A DNA stretch of 64,000 nt from Macrostomum lignano (Eukaryota), in the NCBI GenBank assembly GCA_002269645.1, contig NIVC01000108.1, positions 186,001 through 250,000 of the forward strand. Reading direction: 5' to 3'. A program made the translations under genes and the position numbers. A model generated the notes under the pieces. The model had not been told where the DNA came from, searched no databases, and saw nothing but the letters and a program-made list of their open reading frames with translations. This document shows, piece by piece, positions 1 through 62,369 of the stretch (positions are counted from its first letter, which is position 1; each line of letters opens with the position of its first letter).

Positions 1-7
1 GCTTTAG

Positions 8-2013
<2,006 letters not shown>

Positions 2014-4613: not shown

Positions 4614-5772
4614 TTGGCTCGTGTGCTTGGCTCTCGCAGAGAAATATGCTATGGAAAAAAGTGATCCTAGTTTACCCATGCTTAAATCAGTCGTGAGCAG
4701 ATTCGCTTTGACCTTAGACAGTGATGTCAGTGAATGGCAAACAAATGTAGGGCGTTTTAATCGCGTTGAATCACCAAAATCACCCTACTTTACACTGCAA
4801 ATCCTTTTTGTACTTCATGAAGCCAAGTCTCCAAACCAATGGACCCAAATTCTCAAATTGTTTGCTCTATAGACCCACATTTTGAGCCATAGCCAATGAA
4901 AAGCCATTCTTCAACTGCTTTATTCTCCCACACCAAGGATTGGATTGCCTGCTCTAAGGCTCAATTGGCTTGGAAAGTGCTTATGTTATGCTTGAAGCAC
5001 ACTGAAAACTATATATTTTCAAGAATAGGCCGTGAATTTCTCAAGATTCTACTGTGCAAAATACACAGTAGCCTGTTAAGCGCATACTCAGCAAAATTAG
5101 TCGGGCGGATAAAAGTCCACTGCTGCTGCCGTGCAAGGAGAATGGGGGCAGGGGTGGCGCCTGGAACCGGTTCCGAGCCGGTCCGGGGGGGGGGGCTGAG
5201 TACGCTGTCGAAGGCCCGCGCGCAGAGAGGGAGGGGGTGGTCGGCCAAAGCCAGTCGGGGCCGGTCCGGGGCCGCCCCCACCCCCCAAAATCTTATTTAG
5301 GAAGGCGGCGCCCCACCCCCTCGCGCCCGGGAGGGAGAGAGCGAGAGGGCGTACAAGCGAGGCCAGCACGACACGAGGCATTAGAGAACGCTGGCCAACC
5401 AAAATTCCCTGCATAGTGTAAGTTGCACGCAATGCATCCTGTTGTTACCGATTCAATCTGATCACATTTTTTTATTATTAATTCAATTTTTAATCAAATT
5501 TATGCATGACTAAGGCACCTTTATATTATGACCCGTAATTTAGTATTAAATATTTGTACGTTTTATTATGAAGCGATTATTAATAATTAATCAGCATAAA
5601 AATTGTTCACTTTTCTTTTATAATGCTTTAATAATGACACCAAGGCATTGTTGCACTTGAAAACAGACTTTAAACAGCATTACGAGTTACTCGCATCCCC
5701 TGCCGCCTGCATCGCTGACTCCCAAAGACGCCAAAATAATCCCCAAGCACCGCCGCTCCGCAGCCGCTGACC

Positions 5773-7170
5773 ATGGCGCTGCTCCCAGACCTCCGCTCCG
5801 GCCCGCTGCTGGACGGCGAGGAATTTCAAATTGACAGCGACAGCGAGAACGGCGACGCCGACATCCCGACGCCCTGCGCGACGCCCACCGGGGAGGAGGG
5901 CGAGGCGGCAGCTGAGCCTCGCCGAGGCCTCCTGGGCCGCATCGCCTTCCTGGAGGCGGAGGCCGAGAAGCTCATTGAGCACAGCCGCGGCTGCCGCGGC
6001 CACGCTGATGAGATGCAGTCCCTGCTGGCCCGGCTGCACGACCAGAAGGCCGCCCTGCAGCGCCTGCTGGGAGCCGGCGACGCTGGTCCCGAGCTCGATT
6101 CCTGGGAGGAACCCTGCGACCTGACCGAGCACACGGCTCGGGCCTACCTGCAGTGGCTGCGCCGCCTGCTGCACGACCTGTCGCAGGCGGTGGACCAGGC
6201 GGCCAGCGGGGCCGTCCTCGCTTCCGCCAGTGCCGCAGGCGCCACCGCGCCCCGCCTGAGCGGCCGGCGTCGGCGAGACGCGCCCAGCCGGATCTTCCCG
6301 AACCTCGAGGCGCTGGACATCGCCGCTGTTGACAATGGATCCGGCGACGTCTTTCATCAGCCTGGCGAGGCCGGCGACTTGCGCGACTCGCCGGGCGAGG
6401 GCGGCACCGGCTGGGAGCCGCTGCCCCGCCAGGCGCTCTACTGTGTGGTTGGCGACGCCCGCCGCGTCACCGTCGTGGGCCTGGGTGGGCAGCTGCTAGC
6501 GCGGACGCGGCTGCGCGGCGGCGGCTGCGACGAGCAGGAGGCGGAGGCGGGCAGCAACCTGGAGCGGATCAACTATCTGCGCTGCTCCGGCCGGCTGCTC
6601 CTGTCGGACAACCAGAGCCTGTACATCTGCGACCGCTGCTGCCGCGTGCTCCGCTGCCTGCACGGCTTCAGCTGGGTTGTTGGGCACTGCGTTGACGAGC
6701 CGGCCGACCGGCTGTACATCGTGGACCGCGTCAACGAGTTCTTGTCCGTGTACGGCCTGGCCAGACTTGGGGAGCTCGACCGCCTCGCTCACCGCGACTT
6801 CACCGACGGCATCAGCTCGGTGACGGCCCTGGCCCGCACTCTGTTCGTTGCCGATCGCGGCGCCAACGCCATCTTCGCCTTCGAGACCGAGTCGCTGCAG
6901 CTGGCCTTCCGGGTGCCGCTGCGAAGCCCGCTGTTCATCACTTCAGACTGGCGCGGCGGCTGCCTCTACGTCACCGTGGGCGGCCGGGACAACACCGTGC
7001 GGATGCTGGACGGCCAGGGCCAGCTGCGCCGCTCCCTGTCCGGCGGCCGCGGCTCGCAGCCCGGACAGTTCGGCTCGCCTGGTGGCCTCACCGTCTCTCT
7101 GGACGGCACGGAGCTGTTCGTGTGCGACCTGGACAACCGGAGGGTGCAGGTGTTCGGGCTGGGGGGCTGA
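5773..7170 (+). CDS. Intronless NHL-repeat (beta-propeller) protein with an N-terminal acidic and coiled-coil region, 465 aa
   Basis: accATGG start, GC3-rich codons, NHL signature GQFGSPGGLTVSLDGTELFVCDLDNRRVQVF plus degenerate repeats (LYIVD, LFVAD, LYVT). No RING or B-box seen. Confidence 0.85.
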   Translation: MALLPDLRSGPLLDGEEFQIDSDSENGDADIPTPCATPTGEEGEAAAEPRRGLLGRIAFLEAEAEKLIEHSRGCRGHADEMQSLLARLHDQKAALQRLLGAGDAGPELDSWEEPCDLTEHTARAYLQWLRRLLHDLSQAVDQAASGAVLASASAAGATAPRLSGRRRRDAPSRIFPNLEALDIAAVDNGSGDVFHQPGEAGDLRDSPGEGGTGWEPLPRQALYCVVGDARRVTVVGLGGQLLARTRLRGGGCDEQEAEAGSNLERINYLRCSGRLLLSDNQSLYICDRCCRVLRCLHGFSWVVGHCVDEPADRLYIVDRVNEFLSVYGLARLGELDRLAHRDFTDGISSVTALARTLFVADRGANAIFAFETESLQLAFRVPLRSPLFITSDWRGGCLYVTVGGRDNTVRMLDGQGQLRRSLSGGRGSQPGQFGSPGGLTVSLDGTELFVCDLDNRRVQVFGLGG

Positions 7171-7250: not shown

Positions 7251-7627
7251 TCTAGATTAGCAATCCATTCTATTCCTGCACCCATGATAGGCTAGATTAG
7301 CAATCCATTCTATTCCTGCATCCATGATAGGCTAGATTAGCAATCCATCCTATTCCTGCACCCATGACAGGCTAGATTAGCAATCCATTCTATTCCTGCA
7401 TCCATGATAGGCTAGATTAGCAATCCATTCTATTCCTGCATCCATGATAGGCTAGATTAGCAATCCATTCTATTCCTGCATCCATGATAGGCTAGATTAG
7501 CAATCCATTCTATTCCTGCACCCATGATAGGCTAGATTAGCAATCCATCCTACTCCTGCATCCATGATAGGCTAGATTAGCAATCCATTCTATTCCTGCA
7601 TCCATGATAGGCTAGATTAGCAATCCA
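7251..7627. repeat. 40-bp satellite, locus 1 of 3 (CCATGATAGGCTAGATTAGCAATCCATTCTATTCCTGCA[C/T]), about 9 copies
   Basis: Same unit at 22106-23749 and 53515-53845. Confidence 0.97.
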
Positions 7628-11778: not shown

Positions 11779-25298
<13,520 letters not shown>

Positions 25299-27988: not shown

Positions 27989-28326
27989 CTGACCCCCAAG
28001 TCAGCAGCTCCGGTCAGGCCCTGACCCCCAAGTCAGCAGCTCCGGTCAGGCCCTGACCCCCAAGTCAGCAGCTCCGGTCAGGCCCTGACCCCCAAGTCAG
28101 CAGCTCCGGTCAGGCCCTGACCCCCAAGTCAGCAGCTCCGGTCAGGCCCTGACCCCCAAGTCAGCAGCTCCGGTCAGGCCCTGACCCCCAAGTCAGCAGC
28201 TCCGGTCAGGCCCTGACCCCCAAGTCAGCAGCTCCGGTCAGGCCCTGACCCCCAAGTCAGCAGCTCCGGTCAGGCCCTGACCCCCAAGTCAGCAGCTCCG
28301 GTCAGGCCCTGACCCCCAAGTCAGCG
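27989..28326. repeat. 32-bp repeat CTGACCCCCAAGTCAGCAGCTCCGGTCAGGCC, about 10 copies, overlapping the TRP stop codon
   Basis: Direct reading. Confidence 0.96.
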
Positions 28327-31300
28327 GCGGCAGGCCGGACATCCCCAGCCAGAAGACGCATCCGCAGCCGCTGCCTGGCGGTGCTGAGCACGGCTCCGTA
28401 CTCCAGCTGGGTTCGCCGCCGCAGGTAGCTGACGGGGACTTCGGCCGGGCCGTCCCGCATAGCGCGGCTGATTGCGTCCCACAGCAGCAGGGTCAGCAGG
28501 TGCAGCGGCCACAGCAGGTTGAATGGCACCGGCAGGTCCGGCCCGACCTGCAGGTACTTGATCTTCGTCAGCGATGCCCGGTACAGCCAGTCGGACTCGC
28601 GCACCGCGGACAGCTGGGCGAAGGTCTCGGACATCATGGCCACCAGCAGGTTGATCAGCACAACTGCGCCGACTATCACGAAGGAGATGTGCGCCAGGAA
28701 GCCCAGCAGCTCCAGGGTCTTCAGGCTGACGTGGCCGGAGGCGCCAGACTGCAGCAGGTGGTCTTCCCGGGCCGACATTGTCAGCAGCGACCAGAACAGC
28801 GTCTGGAACACCGTCCCGTCAGACTGGAAGTAGGCGCTGGCGCAGGACACCACGCGGTACAGGGTGATCAGCAGGCAGGTCCAGGCGCTCAGCACCACCA
28901 GGAGGATCGCGGCAAAGTTCAGCACGTCCTTCAGCACCCGGCTCAGCGAGACCACCAGGGTGCCCACGTGCCTGCGATGGGGAATCAGTCAGGTGGGGAA
29001 TCAGTCAGGTGGGGAATCAGTCAGGTAGGGAATCAGTCAGGTGGGGAATCAGTCAGGTGGGGAACCAGTCACGTAGGGAATCAGTCAGGTGGGGAATCAG
29101 TCAGGTGGGGAATCAGTCAGGTGGGGAATCAGTCAGGTGGGGAATCAGTCAGGTGGGGAATCAGTCAGGTGGGGAATCAGTCAGGTGGGGAATCAGTCAG
29201 GTGGGGAATCAGTCAGGTGGGGAATCAGTCAGGTGGGGAATCAGTCAGGTGGGGAATCAGTCAGGTGGGGAATCAGTCAGGTGGGAATCAGTCAGGTGGG
29301 GAATCAGTCAGGTAGGGAATCAGTCAGGTGGGGAATCAGTCAGGTGGGGAATCAGTCAGGTGGGGAATCAGTCAGGTGGGGAATCAGTCAGGTGGGGAAT
29401 CAGTCAGGTGGGGAATCAGTCAGGTGGGGAATCAGTCAGGTGGGGAATCAGTCAGGTGGGAATCAGTCAGGTGGGGAATCAGTCAGGTAGGGAATCAGTC
29501 AGGTGGGGAATCAGTCAGGTGGGGAATCAGTCAGGTAGGGAATCAGTCAGGTAGGGAATCAGTCAGGTGGGAATCAGTCAGGTGGGGAATCAGTCAGGTG
29601 GGGAATCAGTCAGGTGGGGAATCAGTCAGGTGGGGAATCAGTCAGGTGGGGAATCAGTCAGGTGGGGAATCAGTCAGGTGGGGAATCAGTCAGGTGGGGA
29701 ATCAGTCAGGTGGGGAATCAGTCAGGTGAATATCAGTCAGGGTGCTACCTCTGCAGCGCAGCCATGGAGAAGATGCTCAGCAGGGTGAAGGCGTGCCCGA
29801 AGCCCATGGCAACGCTGCCGGCCAGGTGAGGCTCCAGGCCATCCAGCAGGAGGGCGGAGAAGGCAGCGGTGAAGTTGCCGAGGCCGGGGCAGGCGAGGCT
29901 GGCGGGCTGCGAGCAGACCAGAGCGGACACGTTGAGGCCGGCGGCGCACACGCAGGCGCGGATGTCGGTGCCGTTCGGCAGGCCGGCCAGCAGCCGCTCA
30001 CTGGAGGCGCGGAGGCGGGAGGCCCAGATGAAGGTCAGCGGCAGGCCGGCCAGATAGCAGGCAACGGCAAGGTGGTGCAGCAGCCCGAAGAAGCCGGTGA
30101 CCAGGGCCAATCGGCGAGGCCCCAGCAGGCACAGGTGGTGCACATTCTTCACCAGGTAGGCGAACATGAAGATGAGGAACAGAGCCTGCAGCGCCAGCTG
30201 GCCTCCGCCAATCCAGGCGGTGCCGGACGCGCCGCAGACGGCCGACTTGGCGACGCTGTCGCCGAGGTCGCGGGCGGAGGAGACCCAGGAGGCCAGCAGG
30301 GCGAGGCTGACGGCGAAGGCGACGGTGTCGAGGGCGTGGCAGAAGCGGGCGCTCTGGCACAGCGGGCGGAGGCGCGGGTGCGGGAACAGCAGGTAGACGG
30401 GAGACAGGGCGTAGCCAGCGGTAGCGGCGAGTGCCAGGCCCGAGCTCGAGCTGCCTGCGGGGTCGGCGGGGCCAAGGATCCGGATTCAAATCCCTTTTGA
30501 ACCTCACAAAACTACAACCGAACGCTAAATCCCAAGTCCCAATCCCAAGTCCCAAGTCCCAACCCCAGATCCAAAGTCCCAGTCCCAAATCCCAAGTCCC
30601 AATCCCAAATCCCATGTCCCAACCCCAACTCCCAAGTCCCAATCCCAAATCCCATGTCCCAACCCCAACTCCCAAGTCCCAATCCCAACTCCCAAGTCCC
30701 AATCCCAACTCCCAAGTCCCAATCCCAACTCCCATGTCCCAACCCCAACTCCCAAGTCCCAATCCCAACTCCCATGTCCCAATCCCAAATCCCAAGTCTC
30801 GACCCCAACTCCCAAGTCCCAACCCCAAATCCCAACCCGAATCGCCGCCAGCTCTCACCCGGCAGACCCTGCGGCAGCCGCTCCTCAGGCCAGCGGCAGC
30901 CGTGCTCCCAGGCCCTGTCCAGCACGAGCTGAGCGGCCTGGTGCGCCAGCGGCTCCCGCAGTTCCAGGTCGGCGAAGTGCTTCAGCCGGCCCAGCCGATC
31001 CTCTGGCGCGAAGGCGTCCAGCAGCAGCGCGAAGGCCTCCTCGCTAGTCCAGCAGCCGTCCAGCAGCAGCACCAGCGAGCGGCAGCCCCCGAGGCGGACC
31101 GGCAGCAGGAGCTCCCGCGGCAGCAGCGGCTCCAGGTGGCCCAGCCGGCGCATCAGGTTGAGGCCCTGCTGAAGGACGTCCTCGCCGGACGCCCTGAATG
31201 CCTGGTAGAGCGGCGAGACCAGCGCCGGCAGGAGGCGCTCGGCGTACAGCCGGCGCAGGCGCGGGTCCTGGCGCAGCGCTCGGCACAGCGAGCAGCCGCA

Positions 31301-33032: not shown

Positions 33033-34788
33033 ATGCGGCGCTCAGTCTCTGGCTGCCTCCTCTTCATCAGCCTGGTTCAGCAGCTGCCAACAGCTCAAAG
33101 CAACTTTGGTAAGCATGGCTGACTGCGTGTCCGCGGGAAGCTCCCTATTCTAGAGTCTGATCTCAGGGAGAGATCCTAATCTTGGAGAATCCAATCTCAA
33201 AAAGAGATCCTAATCTTGGAGAATCCAATCTCGGGAGAGATCCTAATCTTGGAGAATCCAATCTCAAAAAGAGATCCTAATCTTGGAGAATCCAATCTCG
33301 GGAGAGATCCTAATCTTGGAGAATCCAATCTCAGGGAGAGATCCTAATCTTGGAGAATCCAATCTCAGGGAGAGATCCTAATCTTGGAGAATCCAATCTC
33401 AGGAAGAGATCATAATCTTGGAGAATCCAATCTCAGGGAGAGATCCTAATCTTGGAGAATCCAATCTCAGGGAGAGATCCTAATCTTGGAGAATCCAATC
33501 TCAGGAAGAGATCATAATCTTGGAGAATCCAATCTCAGGAAGAGATCCCAATCTTGGAGAATCCAATCTCAGGGAGAGATCCTAATCTTGGAGAATCCAA
33601 TCTAAAAAGAGATCCCAATCTTGGAGAATCCAATCTCAAAAAGTGATCCCAATCTTGGAGAATCCAATCTCAGGGAGAGATCCTAATCTTGGAGAATCCA
33701 ATCTCAGGGAGAGATCCTAATCTTGGAGAATCCAATCTCAGGGAGAGATCCTAATCTTGAAGAATCCAATCTCAGGAAGAGATCCCAATCTTGGAGAATC
33801 CAATCTCAAAAAGAGATCCCAATCTTGGAGAATCCAATCTCAGGGAGAGATCCTAATCTTGGAGAATCCAATCTCAGGAAGAGACCCCAATCTTGGAGAA
33901 TCCAATCTCAAACAGAGATCCCAATCTTGGAGAATCCAATCTCAGGAAGAGATCATAATCTTGGAGAATCCAATCTCAGGAAGAGATCCTAATCTTGGAG
34001 AATCCAATCTCAAAAAGAGATCCCAATCTTGGAGAATCCAATCTCAAAAAGAGATCCCAATCTTGGAGAATCCAATCTCAAAAAGAGATCCCAATCTTGG
34101 AGAATCCAATCTCAGGGAGAGATCCCAATCTTGGAGAATCCAATCTCAGGGAGAGATCATAATCTTGGAGAATCCAATCTCAGGAAGAGATCCTAATCTT
34201 GGAGAATCCAATCTCAAAAAGAGATCCCAATCTTGGAGAATCCAATCTCAAAAGAGATCCCAATCTTGGAGAATCCAATCTCAGGAAGAGATCCTAATCT
34301 TGGAGAATCCAATCTCAGGGAGAGATCAATAATCCAATCTCAGGAGAATCCATATCCCACTTATTGAAACCAATCTCTCGAAAAATCCTGATCATTAATT
34401 AGCATAATTAGCATAATTAGCATACTACAAAAAAATGAAAAGCTGAAGCTCCGCAACTGCAGTCAGAAACGCCCCCTGCGGCGAGGTGGACCTGCAGGAC
34501 CAGTACCGCAGCCTGAGTTACGCCCGCCTGACCAGCCTCTGTCCGGCCAAGCAGTTCTGCTGCTACCCGGCCGGAGGCAGCCAGGTGGCCACCTGCTGCG
34601 ACGATTGCACCCGGGAGGTGGACTTCAACCCCACGGTGCAGCCGAGCGACTGTCTGAGTGGCCAGCGGAAATGGTCGATGGTGCTGATCACCCTGCTGCC
34701 GGTGCTCACCGCCCTGCTGCCCGGCATGGTGGCAGTGACTGCCGTGCTCATTCTGAGCATGGTCAGCAGGAACAGGGTGGACCTTTGA
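33033..34788 (+). CDS. Small Cys-rich single-pass (type I) membrane protein, 2 exons (33033-33108, 34463-34788), 133 aa
   Basis: Exon 1 encodes the signal-peptide-like MRRSVSGCLLFISLVQQLPTAQSNF with donor G|GTAAGC (phase 1). Acceptor CTGCAG|TC gives in-frame VRNAPCGEVDLQ... GC3-rich codons, 8 ectodomain Cys (C..C..CC..CC..C..C), hydrophobic segment MVLITLLPVLTALLPGMVAVTAVLILSMV, tail SRNRVDL. Confidence 0.75.
33157..34345. repeat. 34-bp minisatellite AATCTTGGAGAATCCAATCTCAGGGAGAGATCCT filling the intron of the small membrane-protein gene
   Basis: Direct reading. Confidence 0.96.
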
Positions 34789-38208: not shown

Positions 38209-41200
38209 TCAGTAGTAGGTCTCCCTCTCCAGCCAGTTGCCGGGCGGCAGGCGGCGCAGCAGAGTCTTGCGAATCTCGTCATAGGTGAAGATGGCCACCG
38301 AGAAGGGCAGGGCGGGCAGCCACCAGGTGAAGCGCATGGGCTGCATGCGCAGGGCCTTGTCCAGGCCGGGGCAGTAGGACATGAAGGCGGCCAGGGTGGT
38401 CTCGAAGAACAGGCCGAAGGTCATGTGGTGATTCCACATGCCCTGCTGGAAGATGGAGTTCTTGCGGGTCTTGCAGATCAGCAGGTCGGTCCACTGCACG
38501 ATCACGATGCTGGCGAAGAAGGCCGTGTGGCAGGTGTACTCCAGGCGCTTGCGCTGGGCGTAGGTCTGCGGGCGGGATGGGGCTCTGTGAGACAGACAGA
38601 CAGACAGACAGACAGATAGACAGACACAGACGAACAGGCTAGCGCAGACAGGCCAGCGCAGACAGACAAGCGCAGACAGGCACTAACCCATTCCTGTCCA
38701 TAGCTGTCCTCCAAGTCGTTGACCCCCTCGCTGTCCCACTCCTTGCGCAGGCCGAGCAGGCGGGAGGGCAGGAAGCCGTTCTCGGCCAGGATGACAAAGT
38801 ACACGAAGAAGCCGCCGCTGGCCTGGATCATGCCGATCTGGCCGTAGGCCATGCTGATGAGGCGCTCGTTAACCAGATTGTCGTGCTGCGGGTCGCGCGG
38901 CCTCCTCTTCATGATGTCGCTCTCGGCCTCCTCGTAGGCCAGGGAGATGGCGGGCACCATGTCGGTGCCGAGGTCGATGCACAGGATGGTGATGGTGCCG
39001 AGAGGCAGTGGCACGTCGGCCAGGATGAACAGCAGGAAGGGCGAGATCTCCGGGATGTTGGAGGTCAGCGTGTAGGCGATGGACTTCTTCAGGTTGTCGA
39101 AGATGATGCGGCCCTCCTCTACGCCGGTAACAATGGACGCGAAGTTGTCGTCAAGGAGAATCATGTCGGCGGCCTGCTTGCTGACGTCGCTGCCGGCGAT
39201 GCCCATGGCGACGCCGATGTCGGCCTTCTTTAGCGCCGGGGAGTCGTTGACACCGTCGCCCGTGACGGCCACGATGGCGCCCTGGCGCTGGCAGCCCTCC
39301 ACGATGATGAGCTTCTGCTGCGGGCTGGTGCGGGCGAACACGATCTCCACGTGGTGGCGCAGGATTTCGTCAATCTGGGCCGGGGTCATGTCGCGCAGGT
39401 CGCTGCCGTGGACAACGCAGGCCTGGGCCTCGCGGGGGTTCACCATGGACGGGTCCATGTTGCGATCCTTGGCGATGTCCTCGACGGTCTTGTTGGTCGG
39501 GCTGATGATGCCGACGCCCTTGGCGATGGCCTTGGCGGTGATCGGGTGGTCGCCAGTCACCATGATGACCTGCGGCGGGCGGAGAGTCGGTGAGCCGTCA
39601 TCAGCGAAGTACGAGATTCAGGAGTTGATGAGTCATCGGGATTCACGGGTCAGACGTCCCGAGTCCTGGGTCAGGATCCAAGAGTCGTGGGTCTCCAGGA
39701 TCCAAGGGTCAGGATCCACGAGTCACGGGTCAGCAGAATTTAAGGGTCAGGATTCAAGAGTCGCGGGTCAGCAGGATTCAAGAGTCACGGGTCAGCAGGA
39801 TTCAAGAGTCGCGGGTCAGCAGGATTCAAGAGTCACGGGTCAGCAGGATTCAAGAGTCGCGGGTCAGCAGGATTCAAGGGTCAGGATACAAGTCACGGGT
39901 CAGCAGAATTCAAGGGTCAGGATTCAAGAGTCACGGGTCAGCAGGATTCAAGAGTCGCGGGTCAGCAGGATTCAAGGGTCAGGATTCAGGGGTCAGGATA
40001 CAAGTCGCGGGTCAGCAGGATTCAAGGGCCAGGATACAAGTCGCGGGTCAGCAGGATTCAAGGGTCAGGATACAAGTCGCGGGTCAGCAGGATTCAAGAG
40101 TCGCGGGTCAGCAGGATTCAAGGGTCAGGATACAAGTCGCGGGTCAGCAGGATTCAAGGGCCAGGATACAAGTCGCGGGTCAGCAGGATTCAAGAGTCGC
40201 GGGTCAGCAGGATTCAAGGGTCAGGATACAAGTCGCGGGTCAGCAGGATTCAAGGGTCAGGATACAAGTCGCAGGTCAGCAGGATTCAAGGGCCAGGATA
40301 CAAGAGTCGCGGATCAGGTATAGTGGGCCCAGCTTGACCCACCTTGATACCGGCGGAGCGGCACTTCTCCACAGCGTCGGGCACGGCGGCACGGGGCGGG
40401 TCGATCATGGACATGAGGCCCACGAAGCGCAGGTTCATGAGCGGGAAGTTCTGCTCCTCGGGGTCGAAGGCGTATCCGTCAGCGTACTCCTCAGCGGGCA
40501 GGCGGAAGTCGCAGAATCCCAGCACCCGCTCGCCCATGCCGCCGAGCTCCTCGTAGGCGGTATTGAAGGCGCTCTTCCACTCGTCGTCCATGACGACGTC
40601 CTTGCCGTTGATGAGGATGTGTGAGCAGCGGTCCAGGATGCGCTCGGGGGCGCCCTTCATCACCAGCAGGAAACGCTTGTCTCCATCGTCAGTCTTGTGG
40701 ATGGACACCTGGTACTTGTTGGTGCTGTTGAAGGGCACTTCGCACACCTTGGTGTTCTTCTTGCGGTACTCGCTGACCCCGCCGATGCTGAGCTCCACGC
40801 ACTTGAGCAGGGCGCTCTCGGAAGCGTCGCCGTTGCACTCGCGCTTGAGCACGGGCTTGGACTCCTCGCCGGCCTTGAACTCGGCGCGGTTGCACAGCAT
40901 GGCGCAGCGGCTCAGGGCGATCCACTCTGGCGATGACTTGTTGTACTCGGCCGTGTTCTGCTCTTCAGAGGTGTCCGCCTCCAGGATGCGATTGTTGCAC
41001 CACATGTGGGCCACGGTCATGCGGTTCTGCGTCAGGGTGCCTGGGTGAGGGAATGCGCGGGTTGGGCTCTGTGATGCTACTGTGAGTAGTGCAGGTCAAT
41101 AGCTCAGCTTCAATACTGCAGCCAGGTGAGGTGATAATGGTGTCTAAAGCCGGGGAAAAGGAGTTGGCAATCCAGAATCTGGTGCTGGGTCTCCATGGCT

Positions 41201-44200
41201 GAGGCGAACTAAAAAGGACACATGCGAGCCATCTGGCAAAACTCCCACACTAGCAAAACTATAATGCGGGCCTGAGTAGCCTCTCTCTTCTCCAGTGAGC
41301 AGCTTGTTAGCTCGTTATCGGAGGCCTCCGGGCCGGCGGTCGATGCCCAGGGAAGCCCGGCTCCCCTGCCGCACTTGCCGGCCAGGAGTCCCCCCAGCTA
41401 CCAACTCAGGCTGGAGTAGGGAGGGGGAATGGATAGATGGAATTAATCATGACATGGACTCGCCTGACTGACTGACACCCTGCAAGTGCGGAATCAGATA
41501 ATCACCTCATTGACCTGCGCTCCCTCATCTGAGTCTCGCCTGACCACCGATTGAAAAAACCTGAGAAATCCTCATGACTACAAATCCTGACACCCTCTTG
41601 ACTGCAAATCCTGACACCCTCTTGACTGCAAATCCTGACACCCTCTTGACTGCAAATCCTGACACCCTCTTGACTGCAAATCCTGACACCCTCTTGACTA
41701 CAAATCCTGACACCCTCTTGACTACAAATCCTGACACCCTCTTGACTACAAATCCTGACATCCTCTTGACTACAAATCCTGACACCCTCTTGACTACAAA
41801 TCCTGACACCCTCTTGACTACAAATCCTGACATCCTCTTGACTACAAATCCTGACATCCTCTTGACCACAAATCCTGACACCCTCTTGACTACAAATCCT
41901 GACACCCTCTTGACTACAAATCCTGACACCCTCTTGACTAAAAATCCTGACCGGACACAGTTTAGCTGACAAGCTGACAACCCTGACTGACTGTCTGACA
42001 GCCCTAACACGCTTGCATACCAGTCTTGTCGGAGCAGATGGTGCTGGTCGATCCCAGAGTCTCCACAGCCTCCAGGTTCTTCACCAGGCAGTTCTTGGAC
42101 GCCATCCGCTTGGCGGTGAGGGTCAGGCAGACGGTGACGGTGGCCAGGAGGCCCTCGGGCACGTTGGCCACGATGATGCCGATGAGGAAGATGACGGCCT
42201 CCAGCCAGTTGTACTGCAGGATGAAGGCGATGATGAAGAAGGACACGCCGAGGAAGACGGCCACCCCGGTGATGATGTGGATGAAGTGCTGGATCTCCCT
42301 GGCGATGGGGGTCTCGCCCATCTCCAGGCCCGATGCCAGGTTGGCGATGCGGCCCATAACGGTGTGGTCTCCGGTGCAGATCACGATGCCCGTGCAGGCG
42401 CCTGGGCGGGGAGGGGCAGGGTGCGCGTTGACAGCACGGCTAGTATGCGAATCTGCTACAGAACCTGCCAGTCAGACTACAGTACAGAATCTGCCAGACT
42501 ACAGTACAGAATCTGCCAGTCAGACTACAGTACAGAATCTGCCAGACTACAGTACAGAATCTGCCAGACTACAGTACAGAATCTGCCAGACTACAGTACA
42601 GAATCTGCCAGACTACAGTACAGAATCTGCCAGACTACAGTACAGAATCTGCCAGACTACAGTACAGAATCTGCCAGACTACAGTACAGAATCTGCCAGT
42701 CAGACTACAGTACAGAATCTGCCAGACTACAGTACAGAATCTGCCAGTCAGACTACAGTACAGAATCTGCCAAACTACAGTACAGAATCTGCCAGTCAGA
42801 CTACAGTACAGAATCTGCCAGTCAGACTACAGTACAGAATCTGCCAGACTACAGTACAGAATCTGCCAGACTACAGTACATAATCTGCCAGACTACAGTA
42901 CAGAATCTGCCAGACTACAGTACAGAATCTGCCAGACTACAGTACAGAATCTGCCAGACTACAGTTCAGAATCTGCCAGACTACAGTACAGAATCTGCCA
43001 GACTACAGTACAGAATCTGCCAGACTACAGTACAGAATCTGCCAGACTACAGTACAGAATCTGCCAGACTACAGTACAGAATCTGCCAGACTACAGTACA
43101 GAATCTGCCAGACTACAGTTCAGAATCTGCCAGACTACAGCACAGCTCAATACACGAATGACCAATACAATTTGCCAGACTCCAATCTCTCTAAAAGTCA
43201 TTAAGGAGAAAAGTCATCAGAGATGCTAACAACACACTGCCTGTTCCAAGGCTACTTAGCCGGATTGCATTGAGGCCCCAGTGAGAAACACGGGCAAAGC
43301 CAAGCCTTGAAAATTACTCAGCAAAGCATTGCTTCGCCGGTTGTGAGAGGGAAGAATGCTGGAAGAGGAAGAATGCTTTTCTTCGCGGCACAATAGCATT
43401 ACTGCCGTCTACTCAGGATGCAGTAGACTGGGAGGCATCTCACATCCTGAGTGTACAGCAGTGAGCAGCAGCGCAGAGCGGCAGTAGGAGAGGCACAAGG
43501 ACAGACAGGGAGGCCGCTCTCCTCACTGTCAGATGGAATCGATTGAGCCGTGTGGGGCAGGGGGGGGGGGGGGGCAGGCCGCATCCCCATTGATCAATTT
43601 ATCCCCGCCACACAGTTCACAGCGGGAGACGGGACCGATTTTGGGATGCAGAGCCCGTGTGTGTGGAGGGAGAGCAGGCCTAGCAAGTACGCGAATTTTC
43701 TCGGCTCCAGCCGCGGCAAGGGCTGGCAAAGCTTCTCCTCTTCAAGCCCAGCCACTCTTTAAAGCCCCTCTTAGAAATCCCCCTTCTCTCTCTCGCCTCC
43801 CCACGGCTGCCCGGCCGGGGATCCAGGGGGATCTCTTCCCCCTTGCCATTGCAAGTCAAGAAAGAGCCCCAAGCGACAGTCAATCGATATTCTTCCCCAT
43901 TGCATGTCCAGGCTGGGGCAGGGGAGACCGGAGGGCGGCGGGAACGGAGGGCAGAGCAGCTAAAAATAGGCGGCCGGTTGGGGGGGGGGGGCACTCAACA
44001 CAAATGCGAAGCTCCAAGGCCAAGCGAAGGTTCTGCTTGTCCTTCCTTCCCAATTGCAAGGGCCTCTGCAGTCCTGCTCCCCGGAGAGAGAGGGAAGAGA
44101 GAGAGGGAAAGAAGGGACTCTCTGGGTCTTCTTTCTTCTCCGTCCTGCCCGCGCAAGCCCGATGGGACACCCAGCGAGAAAGAACTGGAATCAGAGAAGC

Positions 44201-47200
44201 ACTGAGCCCCGCAAATGCGCAGTGGTTTTGCCAGCACAGAGAGCAGGTATTGATGAGACTCGTGCAACCCGAGCCACCCGTTCGCCCAGGCCCCCGCTCC
44301 GCTCAATGCATTTAACAGCAACTTTCAGTAAGCCAGTAAGCCTAAGATAAGGCTGCGAACGCAGTGCAGAGATACTAGCAGATAGGATAGGAAACACGAT
44401 ACGGGGGGGGGGGGCTGCCTGGGGACTCCGATACGGGGGCTGCAACTCTAACTAATGTATTCTTGTTTATCAGTACAGAAAGCCCAGCAACAGTTACACA
44501 AGGGTCACACAGGGCAGGCCCAAGCCGTTGCAATCCAGTGCAGGCCCGACTGACCCGCATTCCAGTCGGTAAACTGTGTTAACACTGCAAATTCTAATGC
44601 TGGGTGCCAAGTGCGCCCGGTGCGTTAACTTTCAAACTCGTCACCAAGCAACTGCTTTGCTCTTCAGCCAGTCCGAGGGCAATGAAAGGCTTAGGCGGGC
44701 GGTCAGTTCACGGGGCAAACTCGTGTGCACTAGCTGGCTTGAGAGCGACCGACAGCTTTTGCACTTGAAAGCACGCGATAGCTTGCATTATTGACAAGTG
44801 ATGACAGCTCCATCCAGTCTTTGTTCTCTCCGCATTATAACAAAATTGAGCTTTTTCAATAATCAAACTGACCCCCCGGGAAGGCTGCACAATGGCCGTG
44901 CGTGAATGAGCGCGGCCCCCTGACCCTGACCGGACAGAATCGGGCCTGCTAAGCCAGTGCAACAAGAACCAGAGGCCGACCAGCTGACTGACTGGCAGGA
45001 AGGGGGCCGGAACAAACTAGGAGAGATTTGCGCCGCCAGTTCAGTCCAGACTTCAGCTGGTGCGTGAATGGCTGCAGGAGGTGCCCTGGAGCCAGTGCCA
45101 GTTCAGCAGCCCCCCAGGCCCGAACAGTGCAAACAAAGAACAGGCCGGCTGCCTTGAAGAGTGTGCCAAGTTGAAAACAACAAGTCCAAAGCACAAAAGT
45201 AACCAATGTCACCCTTGCTGCCTTGATTTGGTTCAGCTTGGGGGGAATGCAGGATTTTCCACTCTGCACAGCCCTGCCGCCAGCTAATTCTGTTCTGCCT
45301 CTCTCAAAACTGCCTGAAACCGTCTGCTGGATACATTATTAAACATGCGCATTTGCTCGCCAGGCTGGTAGCTAAAATAATGCAAAAAACATTAATCAAC
45401 TGCTAGGCCAGCCAAGCTAACACATTTCATTTAACAGTCATCCTTACTGTACTGGTACTGCCTGTCTAGGCTTATAATCTATTTCATTTTTTGTACATTG
45501 GAAGAGCTATAGTCAACTAAATTACTGCAGTATGCCTGCAATAGGATGCCCTGCTCAACAGAGATTTTGTACCCGCTGGAATCTCAACAGAGATTTTGTA
45601 CCCGCTGGAATCTCAACAGAGATTTTGCATCCGCGGGAATCTCAACAGAGATTTTGCATCCGCGGGAATCTCAACAGAGATTTTGCATCCGCGGGAATCT
45701 CAACAGAGATTTTGCATCCGCGGGAATCTCAACAGAGATTTTGCATCCGCGGGAATCTCAACAGAGATTTTGTACCCGCTGGAATCTCAACAGAGATTTT
45801 GTACCCGCTGGAATCTCAACAGAGATTTTGCATCCGCGGGAATCTCAATAGAGATTTTGCATCAGCTGGAATCTCAACAGAGATTTTGCATCCGCTGGAA
45901 TCTCAACAGAGATTTTGTACCCGCTGGAATCTCAACAGAGATTTTGCATCCGCTGGAATCTCAACAGAGATTTTGTACCCGCTGGAATCTCAACAGAGAT
46001 TTTGTACCCGCTGGAATCTCAATAAGAGATTTTGCACCCGCTGGAATTTCAACAGAGATTTTGTATCCGCGGGAATCCCAAACCTCGCCACTAGCCATAC
46101 GATCTCACCTTCCACAGCATTAGTGGAGAAAAAGGCCAGGTTCTTGGTCTCGAGCGGGTTCTCGTTGGTGTACTCCGGAGTGCGGGACTGCGCCTCGGAC
46201 TCGCCAGTCAGGCAGGAGTTGTCCACCTTGAATCCGTGCGAGGTGATGATTCGAATGTCAGCTGGGATGCGGTCGCCGAGTTTCACTTCAACGATATCGC
46301 CGATGACGAGCTCTTCGGAGGGCACATTGAGCTTCTGGCCGCCGCGGAGGGCCATGGCGTGCTGGGGCACCATTTTCTTGAAGCTCTCCATGATCTTGGC
46401 GGACTTGGCCTCCTGATAGTAGGAGAACACGCCGGTGACCACCACTACGAAGGTGAGCACAATGCCCAGGTACAGGTTGTCTCCTGGCGGATTCTCGTAG
46501 GCTCCAGTCTGCAGGATTCGGCAGATTAACGCACGGATTATGGATTAGCCAGCAGAATAGGAGAGATAGGACTCAATTAAACACATATCTAGCCAGCAGC
46601 ATAGGAGAGATAGGACTCAATTAAACACATATCTAGCCAGCAGCATAGGAGAGATAGGACTCAATTAAACACATATCTAGCCAGCAGCATAGGAGAGATA
46701 GGACTCAATTAAACACATATCTAGCCAGCAGCATAGGAGAGATAGGACTCAATTAAAAACACCTAAGCCTGAGAATACAACAACACTATGCCATGCCATC
46801 ACTGTGGCACAGCACTAGACAGCTGTTTTGGAGTTCCAACTGACCTGGATACTGTAGGCAAAAAAGCACAGGACAGCTCCAATCCATAGCAGTAGAGAGA
46901 AGCCGCCAAACAGGGTCTTGCAGAACTTCACCCACTCTGGGGTAGTCTTAGGTGGTGTCAGCTCATTGCGGCCATACTTGGCCAGCCTCTGAGCTGCATC
47001 CTCGACAGTTAGGCCAGAGGTGGGGTTGGTCTCCAGGCGGCTGTACAGCTCTTGGATGTCAATGCGATGCTCATCCATGTCAAGCTCCTGCTTGAGATCA
47101 TCGAGCTTGGCCTTGCCGGCTTTCTTGTCATTTTTTTTCTAAATAGGTGAGAAAAGATAAACAACATATTTGCAACATACTGTACTAATATAACAAAATT

Positions 47201-50262: not shown

Positions 50263-52404
50263 CTATGGAAACCGGCACATCGCTGAAGCCTCCCTTCCGC
50301 CGATCCAGTCCGGGCAGTCGAAGGCGCGGCGGAACTCGATCAGGCCTGCCAGCGCCGCCTGCAGCACCGGCGCGCCATCGTCCACGCCTTCGCCGTCTGG
50401 CGAGCACAGCGACTGCGCCCAGTTGACGAAGAACAGTCGCAGCCGCGGCTCCACGGAGGCGCCGCCGTCTGACGCCGGCGTCGATGCGACATCGGCACCC
50501 AGCACTGCCAGGGCAGCTAGCAGGCCGATGCGTCGGGCAACGAGGGTGCCGACCAACCCGGCCGGACTGGCGGGCGGCAGAAGACCGGCAAAGCAGCGGT
50601 AGGCCTCCCCTGCCGCCTGCGCGCTCTTGGTGGAGTACACCCCGTCCAAGTTGGACGTCGGCGCCACAGCCCCGGCGAACAGGGACTCGGCGAGGCGCGC
50701 CCCGGCGAACGACAGCAGCGCCTCGGCCGGGTATCCCGCGTGCAGCAGCGGTGGCCGCATGACCACCGGCGGCACCACCACGGAGGCGTCGGCCGAGCGG
50801 AAACGAATGTCGCCGGCCACCGGCGCACCGGCTGGCTGGTCCAGACGGAGGCCGAGACCGGCCAGGCGGGCCAGCATGGCCAGTCGCGTGTGGCCGCTCA
50901 GGCGCGGCGCGGCCGCGTGCACCGCCGCCGCCAGCCGGCCGGACACGGCTTCAAAGACTCCGGACAGGCGGGCCCGCAGCGCCAGGTTCAGCAGGGCTGC
51001 CGATGACTGGTGTGGCCTGCCGAAGTCCTCGACTTCTTGCTCAGCGGCGATCGCCGCCAGGCTGCGGTTGCCCAGCCGGCCACAGGCGAAGGCGCGGAAG
51101 TTGCGGCAGGGGTCGGCGCTGACGTTGGCGACGGCGCGAAGACGTTTGAGGAGGCGGCGCCGCTCCGCTGCGAAGGCGACCTCGGAGTCGGCGGCGGCTG
51201 GGATCAGCGGCGGCGAAGCATCAGCGGCGGTGGCAGCGGCGGAGGCCATCGAGGTGGGCCGAGCGCCGGGGGCGGCAGCGGGCCGGGCGCTGGCGGCCAG
51301 GTGCAGCCCCAGCAGGACGGCGCCGACGGCGAGCAGCGAGCCGGCGACGCAGCAGAGGCCGACGCTGAGGCCCAGAAGCGGCAGGCAGGTGGCGGGTGCC
51401 GCCGTCCGACGAGGATCTCGCCGCTCCTCAAAGTGAGTGCCGTCGATCTCAGCGACGCCACTCCGGCTGAACTGGCGTTGAACCTGTGGCTGGCGGCCCG
51501 CCTGCGCCGCTGGAGAGGCGGTGGCTCCAACGGCGGTGACAGCTGCGTCCGGGTTGTGCAGAACCAGAGGAGTCTGCAGGAAAGGAAACGGTGCTTCAGC
51601 TGTTCAACTGGTGCGAAAAGAGAATGAGAGGAGAGGAGAGGAGAGGAGAGGAGAAGAGAAGAGAGTAGAGGAGAGGAGAGGAGAGGAGAAGAGAGTAGAG
51701 GAGAGGAGAGGAGAGGAGAAGAGAGTAGAGGAGAGGAGAGGAGAGGAGAGGAGAGGAGATGAGAGGAGAGGAGAGGAGAGGAGATGAGAGGAGAGGAGAG
51801 GAGAGGAGAGGAGAGGAGAGTAGAGGAGAGGAGAAGAGAGTAGAGGAGATGAGAGGAGAGGAGAGGAGAGGAGAGGAGAGGAGAGGAGAGGAGAGGAGAG
51901 GAGAGGAGAGGAGAGGAGAGGAGAGGAGAGGAGAGGAGAGGAGAGGAGAGGAGAGGAGAGGAGATGAGAGGAGAGGAGAGGAGAGGAGAAGAGAGGAGAG
52001 CAGGTCGAGCAGAAGGCTGTCTCAAGTGGGAGCCTCACAGAGCAGCGCTCCTGGTCGTGGAGCCGCAGGGTGCCGTGGCGGTAGGTAGCAGGGGGCGGCC
52101 CGAGCGGCAGCAGCACGTACGAGTTGCTGCAGTTTCCGCCGCCGCTGCAGCCACCGCCGCCGCTGTCGCCGCTCAGCTGCCGCCGCCAGCGGTGTGCGGA
52201 GTCGCCAAAAGTCGTCGAGGTCGACGCTCCAATCGGCGTTGATGGGAACCGTTGCAGCGGCTTGGCGACGCGGTTTGGCGACCACTGGCAGCAGGCGGTG
52301 GCGGCGGCCTCGGCGTCTGCCGCTGAGACGGCCACGTCTGCCTCGATCGGGAAGGACCGAGAGACGTCCAGGGCGCGGCACTCGGGGCAACAGCAGGACG
52401 ACAT
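50263..52404 (-). CDS. Neprilysin (M13)-like type II membrane protein, internally shortened and predicted inactive; 2 coding exons (52039-52404, 50263-51573), about 558 aa
   Basis: Donor TCT|GTGAGG and acceptor TTTCCTGCAG|ACT, phase 0 (an alternative in-frame acceptor is at 51483). TM segment CLPLLGLSVGLCCVAGSLLAVGAVLLGLHL, then DPCRNFRAFACG (cf. DPCxDFYxxACG), VVPPVVMRPP (cf. FPAGILQPP), FFVNWAQSLC, EFRRAFDCP and a terminal Cys. Confidence 0.8.
51627..52000. repeat. (GAGAG)n pentamer repeat in the neprilysin-like intron
   Basis: Direct reading; pyrimidine-rich on the sense strand. Confidence 0.97.
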
Positions 52405-53118: not shown

Positions 53119-53514
53119 GCCCCGCACGGCATAGCAGTATGCATTCTGTTGTACTATGGACAAGCCCACTGCACAGTGCGGATTTGAACCCGCCCATCCC
53201 GCGGTGCCATCGCACTTGAACTCGGCGCATTCCCATCAGCAGACTGCATGCTATAGCGGAGTGATCCAGTGGTCTGAATAATTACAATGATGCAGAGCTG
53301 GGAGGCTGGGATCGGTAGCAGCTCCCCAAAACTCCTGCTGCAGTTTTCCTGTGGACTGCGAAAATAGAAATTTCAGTTGAGGGCACTTCCGCAGAGTGGG
53401 TACTGGGCTCATTAATAATTAATTAGCAGTTGGCATCACGCCTCGGATATGAATGGGGGTCATTTTAATGCTTGTGTTGTCTTGCTGAGAAACAGCCTAA
53501 AGCTGAGACCACTC

Positions 53515-53845
53515 TATTCCTGCACCCATGATAGGCTAGATTAGCAATCCATTCTATTCCTGCACCCATGATAGGCTAGATTAGCAATCCATTCTATTCC
53601 TGCACCCATGATAGGCTAGATTAGCAATCCATTCTATTACTGCACCCATGATAGGCTAGATTAGCAATCCATTCTTTTCCTGCATCCATGATAGGCTAGA
53701 TTAGCAATCCATTCTTTTCCTGCACCCATGATAGGCTAGATTAGCAATCCATTCTATTCCTGCATCCACGATAGGCTAGATTAGCAATCCATTCTATTCC
53801 TGCACCCATGATAGGCTAGATTAGCAATCCATTCTATTCCTGCAT
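53515..53845. repeat. 40-bp satellite, locus 3 of 3, about 8 copies
   Basis: Same unit and orientation as loci 1 and 2. Confidence 0.97.
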
Positions 53846-53863
53846 CCAATAATACACCCATAA

Positions 53864-61175: not shown

Positions 61176-62369
61176 ATGGAGAAAGTGCCGATTGATGCCT
61201 CTGAGATCCTGATCCTGGCCTGTCCTCAGTGCCAGTTCATGACGCTGAAGGTGGCGTCTCTAGATGCCCACCTGAAGGAGCACAACTGCAGGATCCACGT
61301 GAAGCTGAACAAGTGCAAGCAGTGCGGCATGATCACCAACTCAGACAAGGTGATTGAGGAGCACTTGCAGATCTGGCACCCAAGCAAGGACGTGAAGGAA
61401 AACATTGCCATTGTGTTTGATGAGACTTACAACCAGGACAAGCCGGCTAGTGAGCCCAAGGCAGTGACGAATGCTGGTGGTGGTGGTGATGCTCAGAAGT
61501 CAGGAAAGTCGAGCATTGCTGGTCTGCCGCAGATCAATCTGCTGCAGCTGATGTACATGGCCCACGGACCTGTGGAGATCAACCTGCCTGGCAGTTACCA
61601 GCTGGACAGGACCAAGGACGGGGTGCACGCGTGCATCTCGTTCATGCCGAGCTTCTTGAACCGGACTGTCGGTGAGAACTTCATGGAGAGTCTGAAGCAG
61701 GATCTGTCGTGGAAGCAGCTGACTTTGACAACAAAGGACGGCAAGGAGCGTCAGGAGCCTCGCCTGACCTGCTATGTCGGTCCTGACTTTGAGTATTGTG
61801 GCAACAAGTTCGAGAACTGCAACGACTGGAACCCGAAGCTGAAGGATCTGAAGGAGATCGTAGAGAAGGCGGTTGGGCGGGAGTTCAACGCAGTGATTTG
61901 CTACATGTACCGCAACGGCAGGGACAGCCTTGGGTGGCACTGCGAGAAAGAGAAGCCGCTTGGTGAGCACCCGTACATTGCGGCTGTGAGTTTGGGCCAG
62001 GCCAGGTACTTGGAGTTCTCGAGAAAAGGGCGCGAGGATCGCTACGTGAGACTGCGCTCTGCTCACGGAGACCTGGTGGTCACGGAGGGCGCGATCGAGG
62101 ACCTGTACATCCACCGGATTCCCAAGGATCCGATGGCCCGTCGCACGAGCTACACGTTCTCATTCCGGTACATCAACCCGGTGAAGAAGGCGGAGGAGGT
62201 CCCGAAGGTCGCCGAGGCGCCGGCCAAGGCCGCCCCGGAGTCGTCGGAGAAGCTGGCCGAGGCTCCGAAGGCGGAGCCGGCTGCCACTGAGGAGACCTCC
62301 GCGACCCCGTCTGGCAAGAAGGGCAAGAGCCCCGGCCCGGTGGGCAGCGGCAAAGGCAAGAAGAAGTGA
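61176..62369 (+). CDS. Intronless fusion of two C2H2 zinc fingers and an ALKBH2/ALKBH3-type 2OG-Fe(II) oxygenase domain, with a Lys/Ala/Pro/Glu-rich tail, 397 aa
   Basis: CPQC-x12-HLKEH and CKQC-x12-HLQIWH. AlkB motifs QEPRLTCYVG, FNAVICYMYRNGRDSLGWHCE, IAAVSLG, HGDLVV, HRIPK, FSFR. GC3-rich codons. AATAAA at 62510. Confidence 0.92.
   Translation: MEKVPIDASEILILACPQCQFMTLKVASLDAHLKEHNCRIHVKLNKCKQCGMITNSDKVIEEHLQIWHPSKDVKENIAIVFDETYNQDKPASEPKAVTNAGGGGDAQKSGKSSIAGLPQINLLQLMYMAHGPVEINLPGSYQLDRTKDGVHACISFMPSFLNRTVGENFMESLKQDLSWKQLTLTTKDGKERQEPRLTCYVGPDFEYCGNKFENCNDWNPKLKDLKEIVEKAVGREFNAVICYMYRNGRDSLGWHCEKEKPLGEHPYIAAVSLGQARYLEFSRKGREDRYVRLRSAHGDLVVTEGAIEDLYIHRIPKDPMARRTSYTFSFRYINPVKKAEEVPKVAEAPAKAAPESSEKLAEAPKAEPAATEETSATPSGKKGKSPGPVGSGKGKKK

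Follow-up and report, generated by a model that had tools for sequence, protein, structure and literature searches.

The candidate considered here lies in a stretch of 64,000 nucleotides of DNA from Macrostomum lignano (assembly GCA_002269645.1, contig NIVC01000108.1, positions 186,001 to 250,000 of the forward strand; this whole stretch is called the window, and its own numbering is used below), where it occupies positions 50263-52404 of the minus strand. With a probability that we put at roughly 0.55, the locus is a two-exon gene of a bilaterian animal encoding a type II membrane protein, the ectodomain of which is an extremely diverged, non-catalytic remnant of the catalytic domain of the M13 peptidases, the family of neprilysin. 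On this explanation the membrane-distal 'lid' domain together with linkers, about 360 residues, would have been lost, and the PCxxFxxFACG segment and the C-terminal half would have been kept. The zinc site would have been lost as well, namely both histidines of HExxH, the glutamate and aspartate of GENIAD, the asparagine of NAFY, the equivalent of His711 and the tryptophan of CxxW. Descent from M13, taken by itself, is considered highly probable from the ordered motifs and the cysteines described below.

Gene model and motif map

The window is eukaryotic, with GC-rich gene islands amid DNA of which about 35% is tandem repeat. Read straight from 52404 to 50263, the minus strand begins with MSSCCCPEC, passes through a long LLSSP-like repeat and one TGA (51606-51604), and continues with 446 open codons to AMCRFP and a stop. 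The first-pass annotation had called this open reading frame (ORF) intact; as written it is interrupted by the TGA, and it becomes continuous only once a predicted 465-nt GT-AG intron (52038-51574), which holds the sole in-frame stop of the span, is removed. The spliced frame has 558 codons, and all residue numbers given for the candidate are those of the resulting 558-aa protein. The components of the gene model are as follows.

52039..52404, minus strand: exon 1, 122 codons (MSSCCCPEC...HDQERCS), the start of the predicted cytoplasmic N-terminus; ATG at 52404-52402, with A at -3
51574..52038, minus strand: predicted intron, 465 nt, canonical GT (52038-52037)...AG (51575-51574), with a polypyrimidine tract and then CAG
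51626..52000, minus strand: (CTCTC)n tandem repeat occupying most of the intron (Tandem Repeats Finder, TRF: period 5, about 75 copies, 92% matches)
50263..51573, minus strand: exon 2, 436 codons plus TAG (50265-50263), coding for the remainder of the cytoplasmic tail, for the anchor and for the entire ectodomain

The donor has the consensus form TCT/GTGAGG, its GTGAGG lying just upstream of the repeat, and the acceptor TTTCCTTTCCTGCAG/ACT lies just past the TGA, so that the junction is phase 0/phase 0. An alternative acceptor, GAACAG/C, was out of phase and was rejected, as was the 'LLSSP' repeat as a protein feature, which is a spurious read-through of the intronic (CTCTC)n. The open frame of exon 1, with its 122 codons, is by itself not significant. 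Exon 2, however, contains no in-frame ATG ahead of the hydrophobic anchor, and an upstream coding exon is therefore needed for the anchor to be translated.

The spliced protein would begin with about 184 cytoplasmic residues, followed by a single membrane anchor and an alanine-rich ectodomain of about 345 residues. The anchor is the sole strong hydrophobic segment and is preceded by an Arg-rich flank (EERRDPRR). When oriented by the positive-inside rule, it predicts a type II single-pass topology with a cytoplasmic N-terminus, under the spliced gene model only. Between the anchor and the first conserved cysteine lies a dibasic site of the proprotein-convertase type, RRRLLKR (51144-51164, minus strand; residues 260-266), at which the ectodomain could be released. 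Putative N-glycosylation sequons are present at N272 and N290. The anchor and the segments of the ectodomain that correspond to neprilysin are listed below.

51301..51387, minus strand: transmembrane anchor CLPLLGLSVGLCCVAGSLLAVGAVLLGLH, residues ~185-213; Kyte-Doolittle 19-residue maximum of 2.3 at 191-197
51079..51126, minus strand: N-terminal M13 block NVSADPCRNFRAFACG, residues 272-287; Cys278 and Cys286 are spaced by eight, like Cys80 and Cys88 of neprilysin
50749..50811, minus strand: DIRFRSADASVVVPPVVMRPP, residues 377-397, at the position of NAFY and IVFPAGILQPP, the substrate-binding strand region
50677..50691, minus strand: AESLF, residues 417-421, at the HExxH position; both zinc-binding histidines lost
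50533..50550, minus strand: GTLVAR, residues 464-469, at the GENIAD position in an indel-free hhalign alignment; the third zinc ligand (Glu) and the Asp lost
50404..50436, minus strand: LFFVNWAQSLC, residues 502-512, matching LFFLNFAQVWC of neprilysin; Cys512 corresponds to Cys695
50266..50337, minus strand: C-terminal block EFRRAFDC...AMCRFP-stop, residues 535-558, like EFSEAFHC...KKCRVW-stop in neprilysin; Cys542 is the counterpart of Cys735, and Cys555 that of Cys747

The spacing of residues 377-397 matches that of neprilysin residues 543-563 residue for residue, with DIRF (377-380) standing at the position of NAFY, where the substrate-binding asparagine is replaced by aspartate. The register at the HExxH position is ambiguous by one residue, MAFFT giving ESLFA instead of AESLF, and in one MAFFT run the equivalent of GENIAD was GADVAS (480-485), which likewise has no glutamate; under either register and either equivalent, none of the zinc ligands survives. 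Neither HExxH nor an alternative His-Glu-His arrangement occurs anywhere in the 558-aa protein. Furthermore, the DVHSP region, with its histidine, reads DDGAP. The extreme C-terminus, CRFP, has its final cysteine fourth from the end followed by arginine, as in CRVW of neprilysin, with the tryptophan of CxxW replaced by proline.

From FACG (284-287) to VVPPVVMRPP (388-397) there are only about 100 residues, compared with about 464 in human neprilysin (YACG at 86-89, IVFP at ~553), so that the stretch linking the N and C blocks is shorter by about 360 residues. The claim that the lid subdomain had been deleted agrees with an ectodomain of about half the M13 size, but the 76 residues between the blocks (294-369) align to nothing reliably and a precise deletion is unsupported; deletion of the lid is thus a reading of length and cysteine pattern and not a mapped event.

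Of all the features, the cysteines are the most telling. The ectodomain contains exactly six cysteines (278, 286, 449, 512, 542 and 555), compared with twelve in human neprilysin. The disulfides of neprilysin, in UniProt numbering, we take to be 57-62, 80-735, 88-695, 143-411, 234-242 and 621-747. Two of these pairs were given by Bland et al. as 233-241 and 142-410, in the numbering of the mature protein, which is one lower. Global alignment of the candidate to neprilysin from which residues 106-454 had been removed paired all six cysteines with neprilysin Cys80, Cys88, Cys621, Cys695, Cys735 and Cys747; among 1000 shuffled sequences, 715 paired none and the maximum was three of six. The identical six columns, all invariant, were recovered by unsupervised MAFFT alignment with full-length neprilysins. 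MAFFT is lenient to cysteines, and its shuffles paired four in 15/250 cases, five in 2/250 and six in 0/250. One MAFFT alignment, started from residue 231, misplaced the N block owing to a chance likeness between EVAFAAERRR and EAAFAGESKH of neprilysin, which is corrected by starting at residue 258.

None of the candidate's cysteines falls on a cysteine of the lid; the four lid cysteines and the juxtamembrane pair are gone, and the loss of the former fits deletion of the membrane-distal domain. The predicted disulfides are C278-C542, C286-C512 and C449-C555, which would join the N-terminal segment to the C-terminal half. The catalytic domain of M13 peptidases is assembled from segments that are not consecutive in the sequence, and most of the conserved disulfides lie within it (PMC11669894; PMC12686026), the other lobe being a separate regulatory, membrane-distal domain (PMC11669894; PMC12686026; PMC4121237), and the cysteines are broadly conserved across the family (PMC2259306). 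This arrangement supports the assignment of the candidate's retained parts, an N-terminal segment and the C-terminal half, to the membrane-proximal catalytic domain. It follows from the map as a whole that the observations from which the first-pass annotation had started hold in the spliced model: the MSSCCCPEC start, FACG, VVPPVVMRPP, AESLF, GTLVAR and DIRF were all located, and the shortened interval between FACG and VVPP, the loss of every zinc ligand and the retained structural cysteine pattern, with all six ectodomain cysteines matching the catalytic-domain set, were all confirmed.

Similarity to M13 and competing explanations

Profiles of M13 were constructed from neprilysin, seven amniote neprilysins and 19 bacterial M13 genes taken from genome contigs. 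A protein search with neprilysin as query had returned amniote neprilysins only, which is narrow for a profile, and the bacterial genes supplied the diversity. With all HMMER filters switched off, the resulting M13 hidden Markov model (HMM) gave the candidate 2-6 bits (E = 7e-4 to 3e-3 for a single comparison, Z = 1), a score matched by none of 3000 composition-preserving shuffles, and over the 1032 six-frame ORFs of the window the candidate was its sole match. The HMM domain E value for the N block was 0.0045-0.0064. Profile-profile comparison by hhalign returned two colinear matches, residues 274-288 with neprilysin 76-90 (P = 0.0035) and residues 463-542 with neprilysin 645-735 (P = 0.0021). 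In BLASTP against human neprilysin the N block, PCxNFxxFACG, had E = 0.012 and LFFxNxAQxxC had E = 0.11. Smith-Waterman alignment with neprilysin recovered just two short blocks, of which the N block was equalled by 7/2000 shuffles, and hmmalign to a lid-deleted profile aligned the N block alone. A local alignment with nearly free long gaps (z = 3.9, equalled by 2/1000 shuffles) was too permissive and was not relied on. Taken together, these comparisons moderately support a resemblance beyond chance. The homology to M13 is below detection by Pfam, HMMER and PDB searches and rests on the motifs and the cysteine pattern.

Several results weigh against the candidate being a remnant of M13 or a functioning gene. 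Pfam searches with the whole protein and with four sub-fragments, NCBIfam searches and a phmmer search of PDB gave no match at E <= 10, and the curated profiles Peptidase_M13 (PF01431) and PF05649, by which family membership is assigned, were likewise without a match at this threshold. Apart from a profile match, the other formal marks of the family, HExxH, ENIAD, NAFY and a two-domain ectodomain of about 650-700 residues, are also absent. No homologue was found in a search of 5.8 billion proteins, in an HMMER search of 1.84 billion representatives or in JGI metagenome contigs, and an exact-sequence look-up of the candidate's 328-aa ORF returned no match. The missing homologues are less damning because the adjacent, conserved Na/K-ATPase is also without a near-identical match, the lineage being unsampled in protein collections. 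The profile P-values were computed after the ORF had already been chosen for its M13 look, and the score of the global alignment to lid-deleted neprilysin is not significant (z = 0.85). The unalignable stretch at residues 294-369 belongs here as well, as do an extreme composition (19.5% Ala and only 3 Lys) and the absence of AATAAA or ATTAAA within 960 nt downstream. Finally, structure prediction against neprilysin, a check set beforehand, lent no support: the mean pLDDT of AlphaFold2 was 41.2 when the sequence was given alone and 39.5 when 19 neprilysin rows were added, and Foldseek comparison of both models with PDB gave nothing at E <= 0.001, no M13 match and only noise. Both low-confidence models consist mostly of helices and show a beta hairpin at about 378-389, where M13 proteins have the NAFY and IVFP strands; at this confidence the hairpin is only a hint.

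The strongest competitor holds that the locus does descend from M13 and is a non-functional relic, either a recently dead gene or a retrocopy or partial copy whose frame has been kept by GC richness and luck. No orthologues or paralogues are detectable in the databases or among the window's ORFs, the Ala/Gly/Arg/Pro-rich composition is extreme, AlphaFold cannot fold the protein and no poly(A) signal was found nearby, all of which would suit such a relic; the placement of the entire ectodomain in a single exon would fit a retrocopy. The opposite strand of the GC-rich block, too, has long ORFs that are spurious. Two of these, plus-strand ORFs at 50627-51436 (269 aa) and 51010-51627 (205 aa), antisense to exon 2, have low codon-usage scores and were rejected; they appear to be not genes but a side effect of the scarcity of A and T.

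Against a relic stands, in the first place, the state of the frame. Despite near-saturated divergence from M13, exon 2 has no stop in the candidate frame compared with 3-7 in each other frame, the probability of a stop-free frame being 0.002 when mononucleotides are shuffled and 0.009 when dinucleotides are. The N and C motif blocks share this one frame without a frameshift between them, and its stop falls exactly where M13 proteins end. All six disulfide cysteines are kept, and the splice sites are intact and in phase. Furthermore, codon usage is gene-like in the candidate frame alone. The GC contents of the three codon positions (GC1/GC2/GC3) are 0.62/0.66/0.84 in exon 1 and 0.77/0.60/0.82 in exon 2, and those ORFs of the window that have Pfam hits (Na/K-ATPase, AlkB-like oxygenase and NHL protein) have a GC3 of 0.79-0.89. 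A synonymous-codon score trained on the Pfam-supported neighbour genes of the window, which were themselves scored by leave-one-out, was 0.45 bit/codon in the candidate frame and -0.18 to 0.21 in the other five; the window's real genes, left out in turn, scored 0.04-0.64. The GC island ends near the bounds of the coding sequence, with flanks of 36-54% GC: just past the stop codon GC drops from ~0.7 to 0.36-0.38, and 5' of the ATG it declines gradually from 0.68 (the 50 nt at the end of the coding sequence) to 0.54 and then 0.44 over 100 nt upstream. A long-dead sequence should have drifted to the composition of its flanks, and the island therefore counts against a relic. On these grounds the locus has the look of a live coding gene, not of a pseudogene in decay, and a relic is considered unlikely, at something near one chance in five.

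A second possibility, that the locus has nothing to do with M13, being either an orphan type II membrane protein specific to its lineage or a GC-rich ORF that is non-coding, and that its motifs resemble those of M13 by chance, we regard as improbable. It draws on the negative curated and large-scale searches, on a best profile E of only ~1e-3 for a single post hoc hypothesis, on the insignificant global alignment score, on shuffles that reach five paired cysteines in MAFFT and on a structure prediction that gives no support. It would nevertheless have to attribute to chance the ordered agreement of a type II anchor, PCxxFxxxACG, V.P.....PP with exact NAFY spacing, LFFxNxAQxxC, EFxxAFxC and a terminal Cys-Arg, the fall of all six cysteines on the catalytic-domain set with none on those of the lid, and an HMM score that no shuffle reached and that no other ORF in the window shares. 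An artefact of assembly or annotation, in which a full-length M13 gene has lost its lid-coding sequence through collapse or has it in exons elsewhere, is very improbable despite the mis-assembly-prone repeats that make up about 35% of the window, since the interval from FACG to VVPP is uninterrupted, repeat-free, in-frame and GC-rich, the M13 HMM finds no other M13-like ORF within the 64 kb, and a collapse would need to be in-frame and leave no repeat scar.

Neighbouring genes and repeats of the window

The nearest gene with a clear identity is that of a Na+/K+-ATPase alpha subunit (38212-46544, minus strand), with at least five large exons represented by ORFs at 45993-46544, 42007-42471, 40289-41095, 38505-39617 and 38212-38682. 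Its best named match has 89% identity (the annelid Ridgeia), arthropods and vertebrates together spanning 83-86% and vertebrates by themselves 84-86%, and these identities point to a bilaterian animal absent from the protein databases as the source of the DNA. About 293 residues of this protein are coded without interruption; the same stretch is split by several introns in vertebrate ATP1A genes. Between two of the exon ORFs, presumably in an intron, lies an imperfect 24/36-nt minisatellite (39668-40317), which overlaps the edge of the upstream ORF and whose opposite strand carries a false collagen-like ORF (39079-40323) with a Pfam Collagen match. Repeat-filled introns seem typical of the window, as in the candidate gene.

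Tandem repeats with a TRF score of at least 200 cover about 22 kb of the 64 kb. They are mostly minisatellites of 10-40 bp and the tetranucleotides GCCT, CAGA, CTGT and GACA, and many of them yield long spurious ORFs in several frames. A minisatellite with a 40-bp unit (containing CCATGATAGGCTAGATTAGCAATCCATTCTATTCCTGCA) forms three arrays, at 7252-7627, 22104-23751 and 53509-53848, and is thus a dispersed repeat family; an exact 25-mer of it was not found in JGI metagenome contigs.

Among the remaining coding sequences is an apparently single-exon ORF of 397 aa (61176-62369, plus strand) for a 2OG-Fe(II) oxygenase of the AlkB-like type with a Cys/His-rich N-terminus (weak CEP104 zinc-finger match), for which an exact-sequence look-up gave no match. 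GC3-rich pieces comprise an ankyrin-repeat fragment (3-485, plus strand), a 476-aa ORF ending in an NHL repeat (5740-7167, plus strand) and an exon coding for that half of an Ion_trans channel domain which contains the pore region (28305-28988, minus strand). The ORFs 29748-30485 (minus strand) and 34447-34785 (plus strand) have GC3 of 0.87-0.91 and no Pfam match. No rRNA, tRNA or other Rfam family was detected in the 64-kb window.

Comparison with known M13 proteins and possible function

Compared with the M13 peptidases (NEP, i.e. neprilysin, ECE-1/2, PHEX, KELL, ECEL1 and MMEL1; PepO and Zmp1 in bacteria), the candidate is alike in its predicted type II topology, in the juxtamembrane PCxxFxxxACG, in the six catalytic-domain cysteines, in V.P.....PP, LFFxNxAQxxC and EFxxAFxC, and in the cysteine fourth from the end. 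It differs in the size of the ectodomain, about 345 residues compared with about 700, from which the membrane-distal domain and its cysteines are absent, and in the substitution of HExxH, ExxxD, the NAFY asparagine, the His711 equivalent and the CxxW tryptophan. The cytoplasmic tail is far longer (about 184 residues compared with 27 in NEP), and the ectodomain is coded by one exon.

Among insects and nematodes, M13 proteins without catalytic activity are common, and for a few of them the biology is clear. To our knowledge, the neprilysin-like (Nepl) proteins of Drosophila are full length, implying both domains, and all dead M13 proteins described so far, as far as we know, seem to keep the two-domain cage. 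Drosophila has 21 Nepl genes, inactive and all expressed, whose products retain significant similarity to neprilysin in primary structure (PMC8223033). Goe, a type II pseudopeptidase of the M13 family in which all active-site positions carry substitutions, controls germ-cell differentiation (PMC11266112), and Nepl15 (686 aa) affects lipid and glycogen storage (PMC7822871). The candidate is like these proteins (Goe, Frma and Nepl15) in its lost catalytic motifs and, like Goe, is predicted to be type II. Most Nepl proteins are secreted, however. The candidate has no second domain and is unrecognisable to profile searches. Dead M13 proteins are therefore already known, and the new element is the truncation.

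SEP/NL1 (MMEL1) is made soluble by cleavage at a dibasic convertase-type site between its anchor and first cysteine. The position of RRRLLKR in the candidate is comparable, but SEP/NL1 is a full-length active enzyme, and cleavage of the candidate is a prediction from the presence of the site. Soluble forms of M13 proteins do exist (PMC2259306). Domain 1 of neprilysin is structurally related to thermolysin (PMC4121237), and an M13 protein without domain 2 would resemble the open, uncapped gluzincin fold of thermolysin-like (M4) peptidases; this is an architectural analogy only, with no sequence similarity, zinc site or confident model to accompany it.

As every zinc ligand and catalytic residue is substituted, the candidate should neither bind zinc nor cleave peptides, and judging from its sequence it cannot, if made, be a metallopeptidase. 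If made, it most likely acts without catalysis, like other M13 pseudopeptidases, and would be a disulfide-braced surface module that binds a partner, either presented at the membrane or freed at RRRLLKR, with the cytoplasmic tail as a possible second functional part. We infer its expression, its disulfide-stabilised fold and a binding function from these features. The use of the former groove, or open cleft, as a peptide receptor and the palmitoylation of the N-terminal cysteines, which is plausible chemistry, are speculation. The earlier description of the candidate as a compact pseudopeptidase is reasonable and agrees with its halved size, its missing catalytic residues and its gene-like locus, although the homology to M13 that the term presupposes is a thin link at the level of motifs and lies beyond the reach of standard tools. 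The bolder claim that a living gene here encodes an M13 protein reduced to a 'half-shell', the first member of the family to lack both the membrane-distal domain and the zinc site, in which a thermolysin-like remnant braced by disulfides is joined to a long, Cys-rich cytoplasmic tail and has an uncovered groove that would serve as receptor, decoy or scaffold, is tentative and in our estimate rather doubtful.

As a single locus, the candidate makes a hypothesis of moderate interest. For annotation it is a caution, as it is invisible to Pfam, HMMER and AlphaFold and only the skeleton of cysteines and motifs betrays its origin. If the explanation as a non-catalytic M13 remnant is true, the disulfide-tied catalytic half of an M13 protein can persist as an independent module, and the candidate would provide a naturally minimal scaffold with which to study the binding partners of M13 pseudopeptidases.

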